A stretch of DNA of 64,000 nt from Lepidodermella squamata. Taxonomy: Eukaryota; Animalia; Gastrotricha. Positions 11,245-62,790 of this stretch are shown piece by piece. Where the stretch lies: assembly GCA_047495785.1 (NCBI GenBank), contig JBLDXI010000015.1, positions 4,526,001 to 4,590,000 of the forward strand, written 5' to 3'. The notes beneath the pieces are model-generated. The model made no database searches. It was not told the DNA's origin and saw nothing but the letters and a program-made list of their open reading frames with translations. The translations under genes and the position numbers were made by a program. The stretch's first letter is position 1. Each line of letters opens with the position of its first letter.

Positions 11245-12145
11245 TTACGGAGTTTGACCAGCAGCAAGGCGGGCTTCAACATCTTTGATCACTTCAGGCA
11301 ATCCCGTCAGGTCATCAATGACGTAGTGAGCCCCAGCGCGGCGCAAAATTTCGCGAGCCACGTTCGCCCGGCGTTGAATTTCAGCCGCATCCATTTTCGC
11401 CTCGTCCTCCAGCGAGTTTACATCCATGTAAGTGGAATAGCGAGCAACGCCCACCGTCCAACAACCGGCATTGAGGCCCTCGCCAATACCAGTCGATGAA
11501 TCGTCCACCTTAACTACAGACTGAACCTGATCGACATCCATCAGGTCCAAGTTTCGGTACAGCATGTGCGGCTTCGGACGTGCTCCATTAGCCACGTCAT
11601 CGCCGGCAACACAGGCATCAGGCACAAAACCCTGCTTTTTCGCTTCTTCCAACAAAATTTCGGCCATAGCATGGTTGAAACCGGTAGAGATTCCAACCTT
11701 TCATAAATAGGGGTGAAAAAAGCTGGGCATAAAAAACTCATCTAACCTTGATTTTATTGTCCTTGCGCAACTTATCGAGTGTTTCACGGGTACCAGGAAT
11801 CAAAGTTCCATACCTTCGAAGGCAGGCCAATTGCATAGGTATGAAGTCCTTGTACATTGCCTGAACATCTGCGTCCGTGGATTGGCGGCCATATTTAGCC
11901 ATCCAACGAGCTGCGATAGCCGGTTGTTCCAGTAAAATCGAAATGTGCTTGTCTTTACGCTGACCCATAGTTCCGGGAGGTCCGCGAGACTCGGTTAGCG
12001 AAATGTCAACGCCGTATTTCTTGAACACGTCCTGAAATACGACTGCTGGTGCAATAACGTACTTGTCGACGGTTGTACCGCTGAAGTCAAGGACTAGCCC
12101 TTTGACGGGACCCACGTATTTCCGAACCCATTTAAAGGCACTCAT
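11245..12145 (-). CDS. phnX: Phosphonoacetaldehyde hydrolase (phosphonatase, PhnX-like HAD enzyme), 2 exons
   Basis: HAD motif I VLDFSGTTVD, Schiff-base Lys region MGQRKDKHI, RPKPHM, VVKVDDS...GLNAGCWTVGV, AGAHYVIDDL; 49-nt intron 11698-11746. Confidence 0.9.
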
Positions 12146-45200: not shown

Positions 45201-46342
45201 GTAAGCGTGAGCGATCTCATACCGCAGTTCGTGCGGAACGGAGACGGGCCTGGCAGTTATCAAATCAATAGGTCTAAGCGCATTTGCAGCAGAGGATGCG
45301 GTACCACGCGTGAACATGTTTCCAAATACAATCAGAGCATCGTCGGGGGCCAGCAACGGATTTTTTGAAGCATTAGCAGGTGACTTGGAGAATGATGAAA
45401 TTGGCTGAACACCGGCTTCCTTAATCAAGTAAGCTATTAAATCAGCTGTTGATCTCTGCAAGTCGGCGAATCCGCAGCACAAGCTTCCAACGGTACCCCC
45501 TGCGGTTGTACCCGGCTCTAAAATCACGACTCGGCTACATTGCTGAACAATAGCGTCCAACTCTGTGTTAGCACCCTGCGGAATATACGGCAGTCCTTCG
45601 GCCATCGATTTCAAACATGCTATCGATGCCAGTCTAACAGGCACAACTCTATCACCAAGACCAGACCGCGCCAACTTGAGAATGTCGCGCTGAACATTGG
45701 CAGCCACGTTGCCGAGTCCGTTTATAATTTTTCCAAACGCGATGAGGCTTTCACAGCGGGTTTGAGACTCGGCGGTTTTGTAACCTTTGATCAAATACGT
45801 TACTGCTAAATCATATGATCGGCCAACCATGCGACCAAGTCGTTGACAAATGAGGCCAATGCAACATATCGCGGCGCTAATAAAAAATAAAGGTATAACG
45901 GTGAGTTTATGCGGATGTAGCTGAGCTTACAGTCTTCTCGAGATGAAAGCAGCTGAACTGTCGTTAGTTTTTATGATATCTGTTAGTCGATTCATCACAT
46001 CAAACAGCTTGGTGGTATCTCCCACCAAAAATATCGAGGTCAGACATGTTGCCAATGTGAATCTGGCAGTAAAGCCATTTACGGTAAGTAGCTGACTCAA
46101 CAGCTGCTCCAGTATTATGTCTTGCTTGTCCTTTATATCCGCCTAATCATAACAATAATAACAAGCTTAACTTGTTGTCGAAATTGACTGCTATATATTA
46201 CCTTTCTGGCAGCAGAAAGAACTTTTTCAAGGAAACGTAACCACTCATAGACGAACACACTCTTCTTATGATCCGGCAGCTTCTCCAGCACTTCGATATT
46301 CAGACACAAGCTGTGTGCGAGCTCCATATTCAAGGAATTCAT
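38922..46342 (-). CDS. HEATR5: HEAT repeat-containing protein 5 (HEATR5A/B, Laa1-like)
   Basis: [10 protein letters not shown]...[78 protein letters not shown]; two short 5' exons and a probable 60-nt in-frame intron 39713-39772. Confidence 0.93.
39150..39204 (-). repeat. Coding hexamer microsatellite encoding (EP)n in the HEATR5 tail
   Basis: About 9 TGGTTC units on +; translates as [18 protein letters not shown] on the minus strand. Confidence 0.9.
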
Positions 46343-47196
46343 GACAGCTCGTTTTATCGGTTCATAAAAACCTATGAAGTATGTTATATAAAGGAACTAT
46401 AAAGAGTGGTTTAAGGTTTAGGAATTTATGTTCTCGCAAGTCACGAGGAAGATGCAAAGCAATGGTGGTGGCAGCGATATGACCATTATTCTGGGGTAGC
46501 AATAACGCCTCCTCGGTAAAAACTACGTCCTAAAAACCAGTGCTATTTTTCTCTATGCAAGCCACAAGTCGTGCTAGGAAGCCTTCAAATGAAATCACTG
46601 CACAGCCCTTCTAATCATGCTACCGAAAGCTAATATCCACACGTGCGTAAATACCTCTACCGTCTTATTAGGAGCCAGGAGCCGGCAATCTTCAAAATGA
46701 TGGGCGTGATAGTGAACCTCAGAACAGGCCACTCAGTAACGCCTTATAGCAAGTTGTGGTCACCAGGTCTGTCTCTGCAAACTGCTTTTATGAAAGACTT
46801 TTTTGCGGTACTCTACTTTTTCTACTGCGGCAAATAAATTGCTTTTTTCAAAAACAATTTGCGAATCAAATTTATTTACAAACAGAGCAATATGTAGTTT
46901 TATATATGTGAAAAACAAAATCACGTAACGCCCGCTAAAAGATTCTAGTCAGTACTAGTACTAGGCGCGGGCCAGAGTAGCCAAACGCTGTGTGAGAAGG
47001 TTTCAGGTGTAGCTAGCGGGGTTTCGCGAATGAGGTGCCACTTTCCCATGATTACAGTCCTTACTGTTCTCCCACTTTCATGCTTTCCGTACCTTACTGT
47101 TTCCCCAATTTATGCAATCAAATTTTGCTATCCAAATGAGCGCCATGTCTGCACACAGATGGTGTGTGTACGGTGGAAACCGTCAGCCTCCAGGGC

Positions 47197-47209: not shown

Positions 47210-47540
47210 TAATATAGATGAAAACCGTTGCCCGTTGCTATCTCCTACGTCATTCAGCGTGAATCTTTGGTCTTGAAGAAATCCGTGCATATTTTACAGA
47301 GCGCTAATAGTTAGTTTGTTTAAAGGTCATTAGGTGACACCTTGAGGTCTTTCGCTGTTGAACATCGGCTAATTTTCGCACTTGCTTCACTGTTTCAAGT
47401 TCTTATGCGTATTGCACTAGCCACGTTACACTAAAAGCATAAACTTGCTTCTTCGCACAGTAGCTTATTGCCGTTCGTTTCAAGAACTGTCACTGTAATT
47501 ATTTCTGCTCACTGTAGTGTATGATATATTTGGCATTTTC

Positions 47541-47813
47541 ATGATTCGACGACCTCTTAAGGCAATCGAGTTGAAAAAAGAAGACATCAGGCAAGAACTT
47601 CAAGAGTTGGAACAACGTGTTTTGCGTGCTCCGGCGACTGAAATTAAAACAGAAGAAACTGCGAAGAAGCCATCAGCAGTCGGAACTCCCGATACCCCTG
47701 CTGAGCTTCGAACCCCAGGTGCAGATACCATCGAGATTCGTCAACGCATTGGCTATCAAACTCCAGCTCAGACAAGTACCCCAGCTGACGGCCTTTTCTA
47801 CACTCCGCGTTGA
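47541..47813 (+). CDS. CDC26: Anaphase-promoting complex subunit CDC26 (APC12)
   Basis: 90 aa; MIRRPLKAIELKKEDIRQE matches the CDC26 N-terminal MLRRxPxxLELKxDDI pattern, plus the IRQRIGY motif. Confidence 0.75.
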   Translation: MIRRPLKAIELKKEDIRQELQELEQRVLRAPATEIKTEETAKKPSAVGTPDTPAELRTPGADTIEIRQRIGYQTPAQTSTPADGLFYTPR

Positions 47814-47816
47814 ATC

Positions 47817-50336
47817 ATGTCAGATAAACCGTCTACCAGCTCAAACCCTGCTCTTTTTAGCTTTGAGAATGAATCAGATAACAATTTTATCGGTGCTTTA
47901 CCAGACCCAGGTCAGCTGGACTCCGCTGCTAGCTCTGCCCCTGCTCGGCGTAGCCAAAATCTTCCAGAGGAAGCAACTCGTTTGTATGGAGAGGCTGCTG
48001 TCACTTATGCGAGAGGCAGTCGCGACGAAGCAAGGGTTTTATGCCTAGAAGTCGTTAAACTTGCTCCATCTTACGCCCCTGCTTACCAACTTCTTGCCAG
48101 TATTTGTGAGGATGAATCAAATATGGAGGGATATTTGCAGTACCAGTTAGTAGCCGCCCATCTGACGCCTGATGATTATGATCTATGGCTGCATTTAGCG
48201 GATATTGCGCTGGACAAAGCCAAAGCTGAAATGGCAAATGCGGAGTTACGTGAGAAACATTTTCAGCTGGCTGCGTTCTGCCTTCGTCGCGCTACTAAAG
48301 TCGTGCCTGCCACTTTCCCAAAATTGAGCATCTATGAGCGCTATCTGCTTACTCTTGAGAACAAACCCGTGAAGCAATATCAGGTATTGCAGCAAATATT
48401 GGGAGATTGTTACCCTCAAATGTTTCATGCCGAGTACATGGCAGCGTTCAGAAGTTATGCCAATCACTCTGCTAAAGCTGGAGATCATGCATCGGCCGTT
48501 AATGCCATGTTGAGTGCTTCGTTTTATTGTCCTGAGCATTTTCAAGCCAGCGACTACGACTTGGTTCTACAAAGTGGCTTTGCTGCGAAAATGTGGTGCC
48601 ATGTCATCGTTTTCTATAGTCGCTTGAACATGGTCCGGCTTGTCTCGTCGGAAACTCGCCTGCCGATTAATGTGAGGTCAAGCCCAAACGTTGATGGTGA
48701 TGATACGAAACAACTGGACGATTGGTTGAAGAAAACTGCCCTCGGCGTTGAAGTTGATGTAAATCGTATGAATGACTACCTTATCAGCAGATTTGCCGCT
48801 GCTCTACTCTATATTTCTTGCCCCTTGAAAGTGGTTCAGCCTCTTGCCATGCTGTTCTCCAAACGTGTTTTGCCGCAGATTGATAATCCCGCAAGGTTCA
48901 ACGATTATTTGATCGTTTCCAGAGCCGCCGCTACTGTAAATACGTTATATCATTCTTTGGTCTGCTCGCTGATCGAACCTCTTCTTGGCACTTCAAAGAC
49001 TTCCCTTGAAGCTTCGAATCCAGATGTCGCAACTGCTATTGAAATCAATTTATGGTACGCTAATGCAAAAACTGCAATGGGTGATCTGAATGGGGCTGCT
49101 CATTTTTACAAAAAAATTCTCGAAGCAGCCCCGCAACACATTCATGTACGTCAAGCGTTGGCTGATGTTTTCTCGAAGCTCGATAATCGAGCTGCTGCGA
49201 TCTCGGTGCTGACGGAGAAATTCCCGCTCGACAATCTGACAGTTGACGAGTTTGCGCTTCGTCTCGCACAGTGTTCCGTTTTATCTCAGTGTTCAGGTTG
49301 CGAGGACGCATTTTTGCAATCATCAACTCACCTTCTGTTCGGCGACAAAAGTGACGAAGTCGATGATAAAACGTTGACTGTTTTCGCGAATGTGCACACT
49401 GCGCGTTTGTTTTGCTCACCAGCCGGCTCTCAAAGCGACGATTTGGACTTCTTTTGTCCTCCTCTTCACACCGCTACCTTACAAATGCCGATCAGGCGCT
49501 TGACTCTTCCCCACAGTTGGTTTCCGCAAATTTGGGAGGTGTTCGAGCGGTTATGCAATATTCACTTTGATCGAGGCGAGTACATGCCTCTTTTTCGATT
49601 GCTGATTTTCTGTTTCTTTGCTAACCCAATGCATGAGTTTGCAATTGAAAAAGTAAGGTACATCCTTCTAGTCGTTTGTTTCGCCATGCGGAAGTGGGAA
49701 ATAATCAATACCTGTGTGCGATCGATCATCCGAACCGGTGTCATGAAAGGTTTGACCGAATTTCCGAATTCCGTTTGGAATATGTTGGCGATGTCCTCTT
49801 CACATCTGGACGATATGCGAGCTGTCACGCGAAGCATTACTAGAATTATCGGTAAAAAGCAAACGCTCGAATGTGACGCGATTTACTACATGCTAGGCCA
49901 TGCTGCTTTTGTCCGCGGAAATTACCGAGTTGCTCTTCGCGAATACGGAAATTTGATCAAGCGCCGACCGAGTGATCCTATGTGCTACTTGATGGCCGGC
50001 ATGTGTTTTATCCAACTATCTGCCAATAAATTTCGCAACGGCAGGCCACTTCTCGTCTACCAGGCCATGTGCTGCTTCGAGCGATATCGTGAATATCGAG
50101 GTGACTGTCAGGAAGTTTTTCTCAACATCGGACGCGCCATGCATCACATTGGTTTTACATACATTGCCGCTGATTATTACCGCCGGTGTCTTGAAATGCC
50201 CCCGGTTTGTGGACCACAAGGTGGTACCTACGACTTGCGATCGGAGGCTGCGTTCAATTTGTCTCAAATTTGCCGGCGTAGTGGTTCAGCTACTGCGGCT
50301 CGTTATTTCCTGTCTAAATATTGCGTAGTAGAATAA
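47817..50336 (+). CDS. GTF3C3: General transcription factor IIIC subunit 3 (TFIIIC102/Tfc4), intronless
   Basis: TPR protein: LYGEAAVTYARG...LEVVKLAP..AYQLLA..YQLVAAHLTP; C-terminus QEVFLNIGRAMHHIG...YDLRSEAAFNLSQI...KYCVVE. Confidence 0.92.
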   Translation: MSDKPSTSSNPALFSFENESDNNFIGALPDPGQLDSAASSAPARRSQNLPEEATRLYGEAAVTYARGSRDEARVLCLEVVKLAPSYAPAYQLLASICEDESNMEGYLQYQLVAAHLTPDDYDLWLHLADIALDKAKAEMANAELREKHFQLAAFCLRRATKVVPATFPKLSIYERYLLTLENKPVKQYQVLQQILGDCYPQMFHAEYMAAFRSYANHSAKAGDHASAVNAMLSASFYCPEHFQASDYDLVLQSGFAAKMWCHVIVFYSRLNMVRLVSSETRLPINVRSSPNVDGDDTKQLDDWLKKTALGVEVDVNRMNDYLISRFAAALLYISCPLKVVQPLAMLFSKRVLPQIDNPARFNDYLIVSRAAATVNTLYHSLVCSLIEPLLGTSKTSLEASNPDVATAIEINLWYANAKTAMGDLNGAAHFYKKILEAAPQHIHVRQALADVFSKLDNRAAAISVLTEKFPLDNLTVDEFALRLAQCSVLSQCSGCEDAFLQSSTHLLFGDKSDEVDDKTLTVFANVHTARLFCSPAGSQSDDLDFFCPPLHTATLQMPIRRLTLPHSWFPQIWEVFERLCNIHFDRGEYMPLFRLLIFCFFANPMHEFAIEKVRYILLVVCFAMRKWEIINTCVRSIIRTGVMKGLTEFPNSVWNMLAMSSSHLDDMRAVTRSITRIIGKKQTLECDAIYYMLGHAAFVRGNYRVALREYGNLIKRRPSDPMCYLMAGMCFIQLSANKFRNGRPLLVYQAMCCFERYREYRGDCQEVFLNIGRAMHHIGFTYIAADYYRRCLEMPPVCGPQGGTYDLRSEAAFNLSQICRRSGSATAARYFLSKYCVVE

Positions 50337-50382
50337 ATTTCATACAACTATTAATTTTGATTTATATAGGACCTTATTAAAA

Positions 50383-50802
50383 CTGTCTTCCAATATCGTT
50401 CAATACGTTCTATTGCGAAAGGACTTGATTACTTTACCCAACTGGTCTTTTGGATCTGTCGTAGCTCAAGGTGAGGAACTTGACGATGAAAAGGGCTGGA
50501 ACATAATTTCTTCAATATTTATAGGTTGCCACGCCTGTGTAGCTGCTATTCATTTGTTCGGCAACTCTCCGACGACTCAGGCTTACTTGGAAAGTGAGTC
50601 ACTTGGTCGTATGAGAAAAGTTGTTCTTGAAGTAAACGACGAATCCCATTTACTGCAGTTACGAGATAAACTAGCCGCTGCTAACATCGATTTTCATCTT
50701 TGGGTCGAACAACCGGAAAACTTCCCGACTTGCATTGCTTTGCGCCCCTACGTTAAAGAGGAACTTGGTCAATTGTTGCGTGGATTGAAACTTTATAAAT
50801 AA
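50383..50802 (+). CDS. PTRHD1: PTH2-family peptidyl-tRNA hydrolase domain protein PTRHD1; no N-terminal ATG, CTG 50383 is the candidate start
   Basis: [11 protein letters not shown]...WSFGSVVAQ|GCHAC...MRKVVLEV...[24 protein letters not shown]; 54-nt intron 50471-50524. Confidence 0.88.
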
Positions 50803-52556
50803 TGAGATACCTATCGCGCGTTTTACTATCTGGTCGGCGCTGGCTCAGTGCCCAGCCCGCATCTTCCAAGGCGAGTTCGAACAAACAAGCCAATCAGCCA
50901 GCCGATAAGAAATATAATATGCCCGAATACCGGCCGCTTTACTTGGACCACCAAGCTACTACCCCGGTCGATCCTCGCGTCTTGGATGCGATGTTGCCTT
51001 TCATGGTCGGCGAATACGGCAACCCTCACAGCCGAACTCACGCATATGGTTGGGAAACAGAGGCTGCAGTGGAGAAAGCCCGTCGTCAAGTTGCTTCGGT
51101 CATCAACGCTGATCCGCGTGAAATCGTTTTCACAAGTGGTGCCACCGAATCAAACAATGTAATTGCATTACAGTATTCATTTTACATGATATAAGTAATT
51201 GAATTCGATTGTAGCAAACAATTTTTATACAATAATCGATATACCTAAACGGTTAATTTTGTGTCTCGAAAACATGCTTATCACCGTTTTTCTGTTTTAA
51301 TTCAGATGGCCATTAAAGGCGTTGCTCGTTTCTACAAGCAAAAGCGGAATCACATCATAACAGTGCAGACCGAGCACAAGTGCGTTCTGGATTCTTGTCG
51401 AGTGCTAGAAGCCGAGGGTATAAAGGTATTGATTGGTTTTCATTTTTTCGTGCTATGAAATATCGATTGAATCTAATTTTATCCCGTCAGTAATGGAAAT
51501 GATCTCGCATCATAATTTTATCTTATATTGATATCTTTTTCATTAGTTGATATATTTTTGGATGCCTACCATGCGTCGATAATTTTATTCTCATTCCAGG
51601 TCACATACATGCCAGTGCAGAAGAATGGAGTGATAGATCTAGCTGAGCTCGAAAAAGCATTTACTCCTCAGACGGCGCTTGTTTCAGTCATGACCGTGAA
51701 TAATGAAATCGGCGTCGTTCAACCGATGGCCGAAATTGGTCGAATGTGCCGTAGCAAAGGCGCGTTTCTTCACACCGATGCCGCCCAGGCTTTCGGAAAA
51801 ATCCCGATCGACGTGAACAAGCTTAACGTTGATTTAATGTCGATCTCCGGCCACAAAATCTACGGCCCTAAAGGCGTCGGAGCGCTGTATGTTCGACGCA
51901 GGCCTCGAGTTCGGCTGGAGCCACTGCAGTCGGGCGGCGGGCAAGAGCGAGGTCTCAGATCTGGGACTGTCCCAGCTCCGATCGTTGTCGGTCTTGGCGC
52001 CGCATCAGAACTGGCAATCAAAGAAATGGCATACGATAGTGCACATATCAATCGCCTGAGCGCAATGTTATGCAAAGGCATCGAAAGCCTAGAGCATGTT
52101 ATTCGCAATGGCGATCCTGTCCACGGATATCCGGGCTGTGTTAACTATTCGTTTGCCTACATCGAAGGCGAGTCGATGCTTATGGCGCTGAAAGACATTG
52201 CCCTTTCGTCTGGCTCTGCATGCACTTCAGCCAGTCTTGAGCCCTCATATGTGTTACGCGTAAGTTAGACTATCAGTTTCGACACTAAATTTCAAAAATC
52301 TGAAGAAAAAAAATAGAAATTTTCTCAATTCAGTTTCTAAAATTGACCTATGATCTCTTAGGCTGTTGGTGCCGAAGAGGACGTGGCGCACTCCAGTATT
52401 CGGTTCGGTATCGGCCGTTTCACAACAGAGGCTGAAATTCACTACACGATTGATCGTCTGAGACGTCACGTAACTCGTTTACGCGAATTATCTCCTCTAT
52501 GGGAAATGGTTCAAGAAGGCATAGACATCAAGTCCGTTAAATGGACGCAGCATTAA
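50802..52556 (+). CDS. NFS1: Mitochondrial cysteine desulfurase
   Basis: Arg/Ser-rich targeting peptide [87 protein letters not shown]-stop. Confidence 0.97.
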
Positions 52557-52992
52557 GCCAGAATTCGGCGAAAACCCCATATATTTTGCCAGCCTGATGA
52601 TAATAACAACCTAGTTGTTCTATTTCGCTGCTTAATCGATCGATTTCGGTCGTTTGTATACGTGGATCGCCGAGTAAAAAACTATCAACGTGTAAAGCCT
52701 TCCGTGCGTGATTGAATATTTACCTGCCCCACGCGCTCAACTCTGTTGATTTTTTGCGATGCGAGTGCCTCAAGCACGCGATTCATCTAAAACCTTTCTA
52801 GATTTCGCAGTATTGATTTTGTCTTGCCCCCCCCCCCCTAAAACAACGCGCTCGTGCTCCTACACGTGATTGCAGCGCGTATTCACAAGAGTTATCATTT
52901 TGCTGAACATAACTTTTATACTCTGTAGTTTTTTTTACGTTATCAATAATTAATTCATTAAAGTGCGTCGTTGAATTCACCTGATTGCTGCA

Positions 52993-54255
52993 ATGTCTGC
53001 TGACGCGAGTCAAAACAACAATAATAGCTGCAGCGCTCGACAAACACCGCCGGGCAGTCCGGCTTTTTCGAAATCACTGGTGAATCCGAATATATATGCG
53101 GAGGTCGGTTCGGCGGTGCCTCAGTCGCCTCAGAAAACATCGTCTGTTACTGCGAACCTGCCCGATCTCGTTGGAGGATTAGCTTCTTTGGCTGATTGCT
53201 CTCCGCGCTCTACGTCATCTGACGACTCGTTGATGCCTACGCTAGCTAATTTGGTCATGATTAATCGCGATGGAGCTGATACAGCCAATCAAAAGGTAGG
53301 AGCTAAATTTACATGCATGAATGCTCTTTCATCGTAGCTTTTTCCAGAGTGGCTCAAATAACGACCAACAACAGCAGCAGCCAATTGTCAAACGCAGCAG
53401 TAAGGACAATTCTGCGATGAACAGCCGCGGCGCGTCGACTGATGAGGATATTGAAGTTACGGTCGAAGCTGAGGGCATTGACCTCACCGGCTTGCCAAGT
53501 GCCTTGATTGTTGCCAACCTTCCCGACGCTCTTTTTCGTGACCCTGCCGTCAAGGTTAGTTCTGGCTTTGGAAATTTCGAATTCCGAAAATTTAGTCTTC
53601 TCAAATTTTCTATAAAATTTCCATTTTAACGTGAATCAAAATGAAGGATCAATATTTTTAGGCTCAATTTGAATCGATGTACAAAGCTGTTGATCCTGAT
53701 GTGAAATTCGGCTACTTCAAGTGCTTTCGCCGCGCCCGCCTGGCTTTCAGTTCGCCGTTGATTGCTACTCGTGTTCGTTTGCTCAGCCACGGCTCCAATT
53801 TTATGGGCAACGCCATCAAGGTGTACTACCACGAGAGTTACAGCTCGTCGTCGCCACGCCAACTCGAATTACCCGAACTCGAGAAGCAATTTCTCATCTC
53901 ACCCCCTGCTTCACCGCCCGTGGGCTGGGAGCAAAACCGCGAGGCTTCGCCGATTAATGGCGGGGTTAGCGCCGGAATTCTAACGCCCAGCGTGATGCCT
54001 CACGGGCCGGGTCCGATCACCGAGGAAGTAGCCGATGCCGTGCAGAGAAAACTCGTCATGCGCCAGTCACCCGCGGCCAATATTACAGGCCTCGAGCTGA
54101 TGGCTGCTCTTGCCAAACTCGTCCCTGGCGAGCAGACCGAAATTCTATCGCCTGGCCCTGGCAAACCGGGTATCGTCATCCAAACTTGCGAGGACGCTCC
54201 ATCTTTCGGCCTGAAGAAAATTCAGCAGACTCGATGCCCTGAACGAAAACACTGA
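52993..54255 (+). CDS. RCAN: Regulator of calcineurin (calcipressin)
   Basis: SALIVANLP, YFKCFRRARL, KQFLISPPASPPVGWEQ, PxIxIT-like PGIVIQT, QTRCPE. Confidence 0.93.
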
Positions 54256-61201: not shown

Positions 61202-62790
61202 ATGGCACATGAGCATCATCACCACCATCACCACCATCACCAACCGGTGCAGATGCGAAGCATCATGCCGCCTTGGTGGCGATGGGTGGTTTTAGTTGCA
61301 TGTCTTTACATGAATCTCGTCGTAAATGGTAAGGTATCCCTGTTATTTCCTTGAAATCGAATCAGCATACAATTCTAGGTTATACCTACTGCTTCGGCCT
61401 GGTGAAAATACCTCTGATGACCGAGTATCCTGAAGTTTCGGCAGCAACTTTGGCCATTGTGGGGGGCATTGTTCCAACGATTTACATGTTCATAGCGCCA
61501 GTCGCCATTGCTATCACTGAATTCGTCGGTCCGAGACTTACCACGATATGCGCATCATCTCTCAGTGCCCTGTGTTTCGTTTTAACTTGGGCGAATGGTG
61601 CTTTCCTACATTGGGGATTTTATTTCGACCTCATGTGCCTTGGCATCGGCCAAGGTTTAGCTTTTGGTGGTCTTTACGGACCAAGTGTCGCAGTGCTGCC
61701 AACTTATTTTTCTCTAGATCAATTAGCTTTCGCCGCAGGGCTTGCCAATGCTGGTTCTTCTATCGGTGTCATTATCTACGGTTTTATTTCTAATCCTTTA
61801 TTTGAGATTTTCGGCTGGCGAGGAACAATGTTATTTTATGCTGGGATCTCTCTTCAAGGCGTCCTCGCTGGTTTGGCTTTCATGAAAATGGTCCCTGTGA
61901 AACAGCAGCCTTGCCCGTCTAGCCTACAACTTGCCGAACTAGGCAAAGACGAACCAGATTATACGGAAACTTTAGTTGAAGATGCCCAGAAACAAGAGCC
62001 GGAGGTTCCGAAGAAGGAATTTCTGCCGATACTGAAACGATATTTCGATTTAAACATGTTCAAACAATGGCCATTTGTTTGCGTAATTGCATCGGCTGGA
62101 CTTGCCATCGTCGGTAAGAATAAGATAACCCGGCAACTTAGCTAATTAATGCTATTCCAATATATTCTAGGGTACTTTGTTCCGACTCTTCTCCTACCTG
62201 GTCACGCGAAAGATCCTAAGAATGGAGTTCACAAATTTGTCGCGCCATATATAATGAGCATTTTCGGCATAATGAATCTCATAGGGCGAATAGTCTTGGG
62301 CAAAGTCGGAGATCTGGGCAACCGCTACGCCATATTTACGCCATACAGCTTGTACAACGCATCACTGATACTAGGAGCGATATGTTTTCTTGTTCTGCCG
62401 CATGTTATGTTTCTCGGAACGATTTCTTTCGTCACTTTCGCTGTACTTTACGGCTTCTCATGTGCACCGATTATCATCATGCGATCACTTCTAACAACGA
62501 CTTTATTTGGGAAAAAGAACGCAAGCGCTTCGTATGGCTGGTTTTTGTGTGCACAAGGCGGCTTGCAGATGTTCGGCTACGTCTTACCAGGTGGGTGGAT
62601 TTATTAGAGTTTTGTTTGAATTTATTAAAACTTCTCTACAGCCTTGCTGGAAGAAAAGCTTGGGTCGTCTTGGGCTTACTCTTTTGCTGCTCTCATGTTC
62701 CTGCTCTCATCACTTGCCTGTAGCTCTACTTTCAAACCATATTTCGAAGCAAGGAGAAAGCAACTGGAGGAAATGAAAACGAAAAGCTAG
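61202..62790 (+). CDS. SLC16/monocarboxylate transporter-like MFS protein, copy 3, with N-terminal His9
   Basis: MAHE-H9-QPVQMRSIMPPWWRWVVL; introns 61330-61378, 62114-62170, 62591-62641; stop TAG 62788-62790. Confidence 0.85.

Follow-up and report, generated by a model that had tools for sequence, protein, structure and literature searches.

The closest described counterparts of the locus considered here come from plants, algae and insects. In land plants and green algae, CDC26 and TTM3 form a bicistronic locus (Lorenzo-Orts et al. 2019, as described in PMC11291117 and PMC11062462). The Drosophila sloth1-sloth2 locus has a spacer of 5 nucleotides (nt), a non-optimal Kozak context at its first open reading frame (ORF1) and an optimal one at its second (ORF2), and leaky scanning was established for it by reporters (PMC9681215). 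Green-algal polycistronic loci are characterized by a short ORF1, by the depletion of ATG 3-mers before ORF2 and by a short or overlapping distance between the ORFs, and the Kozak context of ORF1 tunes the ratio of the products (PMC7896298, PMC11291117). Operons resolved by a spliced leader (SL) are found in nematodes and tunicates (PMC7986045, PMC1657053). The present analysis concerns a 64-kb stretch of the genome of the gastrotrich Lepidodermella squamata (contig JBLDXI010000015.1, positions 4,526,001 to 4,590,000), hereafter the window, in which a short ORF resembling that of CDC26 lies 3 nt ahead of the ORF for GTF3C3 (TFIIIC102). The reading favoured here, with a probability of roughly 0.58, is that both ORFs are carried by one bicistronic mRNA and translated by leaky scanning. 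Leaky-scanning bicistrons as such are already known; the pairing of CDC26 with GTF3C3 in an animal is new.

The elements of the junction are the following:

47541..47813, forward strand: CDC26-like ORF, 90 codons plus TGA, T at -3, zero internal ATG in all frames
47814..47816, forward strand: spacer ATC of 3 nt (the equivalent spacer in the relative L001 has 8 nt)
47817..50336, forward strand: GTF3C3/TFIIIC102 ORF, 839 codons, intronless, A at -3
47521..47544, forward strand: upstream ORF (uORF) of 7 codons, whose TGA (47542-47544) overlaps the CDC26-like ATG as ATGA
47503..47517, forward strand: acceptor-like site (TTCTGCTCACTGTAG) from the pyrimidine-tract plus YAG scan, 23 nt upstream of the CDC26-like ATG
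50332..50337, forward strand: AATAAA overlapping the GTF3C3 stop codon

The junction reads ...CGT TGA ATC ATG TCA... at 47808-47822. No ATG was found in any frame from 47544 to 47816, and the nearby ATGs are at 47405, 47521, 47541 and 47817. The first start codon lies in the context ATTTTCATGA, with T at -3, and the second in TGAATCATGT, with A at -3. Between the two start codons neither a pyrimidine-tract/YAG acceptor nor a canonical AATAAA was found, in the window or in the relative, acceptors being judged by a crude scan for a pyrimidine tract followed by YAG. By this crude yardstick, the poly(A) signal and 3' splice acceptor of an SL-resolved operon junction are both absent from the boundary. 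The canonical AATAAA is missing from the whole interval between 47541 and 50025; an ATTAAA occurs at 47643, within the CDC26-like ORF. A first, sequence-only reading of the window had proposed this anatomy, namely a 3-nt gap without poly(A) signal or acceptor, an upstream ORF without internal ATG, a weak first start followed by A at -3 for GTF3C3, and a 7-codon uORF from ATG 47521 that runs into the CDC26-like ATG. All of these features were found as it described them. The position of the uORF is not conserved in L001. The mature mRNA may begin at the acceptor-like site, which would then be a trans-splice site or the acceptor of an intron in the 5' untranslated region (UTR), and the AATAAA over the GTF3C3 stop is the likely 3'-end signal of a CDC26-GTF3C3 mRNA. 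RNA folding around the junction and around the first AUG is unremarkable (z +0.5 to +0.9), and a search for structured elements or elements resembling internal ribosome entry sites gave no signal.

The plant CDC26-TTM3 locus, which the sequence-only reading had invoked as a precedent, is real and shares with the window a short CDC26 ORF upstream of an unrelated main ORF, in a layout kept over long evolutionary distances. The window differs in the partner (GTF3C3), in the animal host, in the gap of 3-8 nt and in a CDC26 match that remains below the family threshold. In plants the transcript and both products were demonstrated; here they are predicted. With sloth1-sloth2 the locus has in common that it belongs to an animal, that the spacer is tight and that a weak start context precedes a strong one. 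The sloth genes, however, encode paralogous small mitochondrial peptides, whereas here a 90-codon ORF, known from sequence, precedes an unrelated ORF of 839 codons. The short ORF1, the ATG depletion and the short or overlapping gaps recall the green-algal loci; unlike these, the locus belongs to another kingdom, and its bicistrons seem to be nested in an operon-like cluster with junctions of an RNA-processing type.

The large ORF is GTF3C3/TFIIIC102 by homology, as the sequence-only reading had named it. It matches human GTF3C3 (PDB 8clk_D) with an E value of 9.2e-51 in two stretches, the C-terminal residues 637-837 aligning to 688-885, and yeast tau131 with an E value of 2e-12. TPR_14, TPR_19 and TPR_2 score above the Pfam cut-off within it, and the homologous protein P0001 is 70% identical to it. 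The word-based homology search returned only a single relative for GTF3C3 and two for the small ORF, and an exact look-up of both window proteins found neither in the protein collection.

The arrangement recurs in four ENA metagenome contigs, L001-L004, which belong to one species and are 99.8% mutually identical. Their neighbourhood is that of the window: HEATR5 on the reverse strand, followed by the CDC26-like gene, GTF3C3, PTH2, NFS1 and RCAN on the forward strand. Amino-acid identity between L001 and the window is ~70%. In the ORFs tested (CDC26-like, GTF3C3 and PTH2) the proportion of synonymous differences (pS) is 0.83-0.86, which is saturated, versus 0.15-0.22 for nonsynonymous differences (pN); the CDC26-like ORF itself has a pN of 0.20 and a pS of 0.86. 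The low pN at saturated pS indicates purifying selection on the three ORFs across a deep split. At the L001 junction the gap is 8 nt, the small ORF and the gap together contain zero ATG, and the start contexts repeat those of the window, with T at -3 for the small ORF and A at -3 for GTF3C3. An acceptor-like site is also present in L001 (8696-8710), 24 nt upstream of the CDC26-like ATG (8735). In both species the two ORFs are thus colinear on the same strand, with a short gap (3 nt; 8 nt in L001-L004) and a weak start ahead of a strong one, as looked for in a leaky-scanning bicistron.

A more distant homologue offers a contrast. The soil-type Joint Genome Institute (JGI) contig L005 carries a small ORF at 34-339 (product P0003), followed after a 100-nt spacer by a caveolin-like ORF at 440-1039 (Pfam Caveolin, E 2.6e-5, just under the cut-off), and the spacer holds the acceptor-like TTTTTTGTAG. 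L005 and the related L006 are possibly genomic, so that they inform on adjacency only. The P0003 ORF has G at -3, and its sequence offers 5 potential ATG sites, with 4 actual out-of-frame ATGs. The wider spacer, the G at -3 and the ATGs of L005 together imply that the weak start and the ATG-free state track the tight junction and not the protein family. The arrangement also suggests that the CDC26-like gene is readily placed ahead of other genes. Under the supposition that L005 is a transcript, its first 28 nt were considered as a spliced leader and rejected: they have no match in the window, and L006 (ORF 32-631), which carries a convergent gene, is colinear with L005 through the putative acceptor.

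AUG depletion of the kind found in leaky-scanning bicistrons is observed in the CDC26-like ORF. ATG-free windows of 270 nt make up 0.9% of the forward strand of the 64-kb window. Within the two large coding sequences, ATG-free windows of 276 nt account for 0.9%, and those of comparable length for 1.6% in the coding sequences of the relative. The avoidance extends to the protein. Both in the window and in L001, the small protein is devoid of Met (beyond the start), Cys and Trp, and the residue pairs able to encode an out-of-frame ATG number 1 in the window protein and 0 in that of L001. Among the 90-residue windows in GTF3C3 and HEATR5, fewer than 0.4% are free of Met and offer no more than 1 such pair. 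The start contexts are also partitioned: position -3 is a purine at 8/8 main-ORF starts (HEATR5, GTF3C3, NFS1 and RCAN in both species) and a pyrimidine at 4/4 bypassed AUGs. Among the tight ORF pairs of the window, an ATG-free upstream ORF is confined to CDC26-GTF3C3 and PTH2-NFS1.

The second of these pairs lies directly downstream and consists of the following elements:

50383..50470, forward strand: PTH2 exon 1, no ATG; the conserved in-frame CTG at 50383, with A at -3, is the proposed start
50471..50524, forward strand: PTH2 intron (GTGAGG...TTTATAG), which holds the only other ATG (50486) and shares its position with the L001 intron 11743-11801
50525..50802, forward strand: PTH2 exon 2, one in-frame ATG (50611, C at -3), TAA at 50800-50802, Pfam PTH2 E 1.2e-16
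50802..51158, forward strand: exon 1 of NFS1 (cysteine desulfurase), ATG at 50802 with A at -3, Pfam Aminotran_5 E 4e-23, conserved with L001

The PTH2 stop and the NFS1 ATG are fused as TAATG, a 1-nt overlap, in the window and are separated by a 2-nt gap in L001, where PTH2 occupies 11652-12079 and NFS1 begins at 12082. An ATG start of PTH2 is present in neither species. Conservation of PTH2 between the two begins directly past the in-frame CTG (50383; 11652 in L001), which has A at -3, and we infer that PTH2 would start at this CUG. The intron, of 54 nt in the window and 59 nt in L001, is conserved. After splicing, the stretch from the GTF3C3 stop to the NFS1 ATG measures 411 nt in the window and 472 nt in L001 and contains 1 ATG, the in-frame Met codon with C at -3. 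Synonymous resampling of PTH2 predicts approximately 4.5-5 ATGs versus the 1 present, a state reached in 47/5000 runs for the window (P 0.009) and in 11/5000 for L001 (P 0.002). This comparison provides direct evidence for selection against AUG upstream of NFS1, that is, for scanning bypass in this lineage. By its appearance PTH2-NFS1 is another leaky-scanning bicistron, whose first start is not an AUG, and its leaky-scanning signature is the stronger of the two. The possibility that PTH2 receives its AUG from a flatworm-type spliced leader was considered and discarded: the frame would fit in L001 but not in the window, and at the L001 CDC26 acceptor such a leader would add 9 residues to an N-terminus that must stay free.

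The proposed mechanism for the main pair is as follows. The 5' end of the mRNA would lie at or upstream of the acceptor-like site that precedes the first ATG, and the AATAAA over the GTF3C3 stop would set its 3' end. Only some of the scanning 40S subunits would initiate at the first AUG, because of its T at -3, and yield the small protein. The other subunits would continue through 276 AUG-free nt and start at the GTF3C3 AUG, with A at -3. The bicistron would constitute the first unit of a cluster composed of CDC26-GTF3C3, PTH2-NFS1 and RCAN. The second unit would operate alike: PTH2 would be translated from its conserved CUG and, its message being nearly AUG-free, most ribosomes would reach the NFS1 AUG that overlaps the PTH2 stop.

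Several points weigh against this reading. A single transcript is deduced solely because processing signals were not found between the starts. Synonymous-codon resampling, a weak test for the CDC26-like ORF, gives P values of 0.23 in the window and 1.0 in L001; it is uninformative for the small ORF because a Met-free protein has almost no residue pairs able to encode an out-of-frame ATG. The argument consequently rests on the avoidance at the amino-acid level, and the background for that comparison was drawn from two proteins that differ in composition and are structured, which the small protein is not. Because of their shared ancestry, the window and L001 do not count as two independent replicates at the protein level. 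The match of the small ORF to the CDC26 family, given below, falls under the cut-off. Finally, the cluster resembles an SL-type operon, and the acceptor-like sites closely preceding many start codons make it probable that trans-splicing is active in this genome. The claim of a bicistron with GTF3C3 made in the sequence-only reading therefore fares in two ways: the layout, the ATG-free state and the weak and strong contexts are kept in the relative at saturated synonymous sites, but the cluster keeps trans-splicing or an internal 5' end as a live rival.

In that rival, the cluster is transcribed as an operon pre-mRNA, the 5' end of GTF3C3 arises by SL trans-splicing or from an internal transcription start within the small ORF, each protein is made from a separate mature mRNA, and the ATG-free state is incidental. 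The same-strand run of five genes (CDC26-like, GTF3C3, PTH2, NFS1 and RCAN) extends over 47541-54255 in the window and 8735-14771 in L001, with the CDC26-GTF3C3 pair as its first two cistrons. The spacing in L001 is within 0-100 nt, the successive gaps being 8, ~56, 2 and 95 nt, and acceptor-like sites occur 4-30 nt upstream of several start codons. Two junctions carry both poly(A)-like signals and acceptor-like sites and look like RNA-processing boundaries. At GTF3C3-PTH2 in the window, the AATAAA over the GTF3C3 stop is followed by T-rich AG sites; at NFS1-RCAN, acceptor-like sites lie in an interval of 437 nt (95 nt in L001), with a T-rich AG before RCAN. AG dinucleotides are also present 36-38 nt upstream of the GTF3C3 ATG in both species, and both tunicate operons without intercistronic regions and SL1-type operons of C. 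elegans are known (PMC7986045). The locus thus resembles SL operons in its same-strand runs, its spacing of approximately 0-100 nt and its acceptor-like sites before starts, most clearly at GTF3C3-PTH2 and NFS1-RCAN. It departs from them at CDC26-GTF3C3 and PTH2-NFS1, where the ORFs abut so closely that a 3' UTR, a poly(A) signal or an acceptor could not be accommodated. In neither species does a pyrimidine-tract/YAG site or an AATAAA lie between the starts, and processing within the small ORF would destroy the mRNA of that ORF. The conserved ATG avoidance, the weak and strong contexts, the contrast with L005 and the same signature in PTH2-NFS1 would all be left unexplained. An RNA-level origin of the GTF3C3 5' end is thus considered unlikely.

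Which protein the small ORF encodes is a matter of identity that cuts across the mechanisms. CDC26 is a subunit of the anaphase-promoting complex/cyclosome, in which it occupies the TPR groove of CDC16/APC6. The sequence-only reading had called the 90-residue product CDC26 and had pointed to a comparison with the Pfam family ANAPC_CDC26 (PF10471). That comparison falls short of the gathering cut-off: the family requires 24.5 bits and the window ORF scores 16.3 bits (E 0.019). Its homologues P0002 (71% identity) and P0003 (44%) score 15.2 and 15.1 bits. PF10471 is nevertheless the sole Pfam family matched by each of the three homologues, and every match is anchored with Met1 at model position 1, residues 1-28 of the window protein aligning to model positions 1-27. 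CDC26 is described as a protein of ~85 residues with a conserved N-terminal block of approximately residues 1-24, in which Thr7 (in the human protein) and Leu9 are key APC6 contacts (PMC4344199). The small proteins, of 90, 90 and 101 residues, are near-invariant over residues 1-26 and variable in the middle, and thus show a conserved N-terminal block from Met1. Within their MIRRPLKAIEL segment, all three have Lys7 and Ile9 and not Thr7 and Leu9, and only the change of Leu9 to Ile is conservative. A profile of the three sequences searched against PDB gave human CDC26 (4ui9_G) at an E value of 7.1, and PDB searches with the single sequence and with N-terminal and C-terminal profiles gave no CDC26 match. 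The C-terminal RIGY/FYTPR motifs add no measurable support. Among 1.84 billion representative proteins, the small-ORF profile found no bridge to canonical CDC26 and returned only P0002, P0003, P0004 and P0005. The last two were rejected as relatives, since they look unrelated: P0005 is a repeat protein, and P0004 is a 3237-residue protein matched in 17 stretches. Scans of JGI metagenomes with the CDC26-like and GTF3C3 profiles gave no matches.

On this evidence the small ORF quite probably encodes CDC26. What stands of the earlier assignment is the sole family match from Met1; the threshold score and the Thr7 contact do not support it. The converse, by which the ORF encodes a small protein confined to this lineage, acts as a conserved-peptide uORF that regulates GTF3C3, or is the first part of a readthrough fusion, is quite improbable. 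It draws on the score under the gathering cut-off, on the lack of a significant match to CDC26 chains in PDB or among the representative proteins and on the replacement of Thr7 by Lys. Against it stand the exclusive matches of all three homologues to PF10471 from Met1, and a size of 90-101 residues and a conservation pattern over residues 1-26 that agree with the CDC26 described (PMC4344199). The homologue in L005 precedes a different gene, which argues that the peptide is not a GTF3C3-specific uORF.

Termination followed by reinitiation is very unlikely. Ribosomes would terminate at the TGA of the 90-codon ORF and restart 3 nt (or 8 nt) further on at the GTF3C3 AUG, and likewise at the TAATG of PTH2 and NFS1. 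The gaps of 3, 8, -1 and 2 nt have the geometry favoured for reinitiation (PMC11291117, PMC10275272). The process is normally inefficient past ORFs of 90-120 codons in the absence of a dedicated RNA element, however, and no structure stands out here. Moreover, it needs neither an ATG-free upstream ORF nor a weak first start, both of which are seen and conserved, and a PTH2 without AUG start fits bypass and not coupling.

The window ORFs share one reading frame, with TGA ATC alone between them (47811-47819), so that stop-codon readthrough would fuse the CDC26-like ORF to GTF3C3, but a conserved readthrough fusion is excluded by L001, where the starts lie 281 nt apart and the frames differ.

The wider window contains further observations. 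Pyrimidine-rich TAG or CAG sites are located 4-65 nt upstream of many candidate starts, at 46370 (reverse strand), 47517, 52928, 58588, 19640 and 16039 (reverse strand). Such sites would fit widespread SL trans-splicing or 5'-UTR introns. An Rfam scan of the window gave no matches, hence no SL RNA gene within it. The HEATR5 neighbour matches metazoan HEATR5 proteins only, at 28-33% identity, which bears out the animal host assumed by the sequence-only reading and points to a divergent and sparsely sampled one. HEATR5, on the reverse strand, has three short 5' exons (46193-46342, 45768-46145) upstream of a 6.9-kb exon, and its ATG at 46341 is preceded by a uORF of 3 codons (ATG AAC CGA TAA). 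HEATR5 and the CDC26-like gene point away from each other, their start codons lying ~1.2 kb apart. An apparently split MFS gene at 62145/62149 was set aside as an ordinary intron of 50-odd nt.

A fuller picture is advanced tentatively and falls just short of an even chance. In this picture, operon-like clusters would be built partly from leaky-scanning bicistrons, so that RNA processing and scanning bypass coexist; an AUG-free CDC26 would stand upstream of GTF3C3, in convergence with the plant CDC26-TTM3 locus; selection against AUG would have shaped the small protein; and PTH2 would start at CUG. The further idea of the sequence-only reading, that the arrangement couples a subunit of the anaphase-promoting complex/cyclosome to RNA polymerase III capacity, is speculation with nothing beyond adjacency behind it, and the partner in L005 is a different one.

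If the favoured reading is true, an ATG-free upstream ORF combined with a pyrimidine at -3 and a gap of at most 10 nt would provide a signature for searches and gene models; an AUG-less PTH2 would be missed by automatic gene callers. Leaky-scanning bicistrons could then occur inside animal operon-like clusters. The locus would be a second independent case, in animals besides plants, in which the tiny CDC26 is expressed from a cistron ahead of a housekeeping gene unrelated to it; this would suggest that the leaders of other genes have repeatedly served to 'park' very small essential ORFs.

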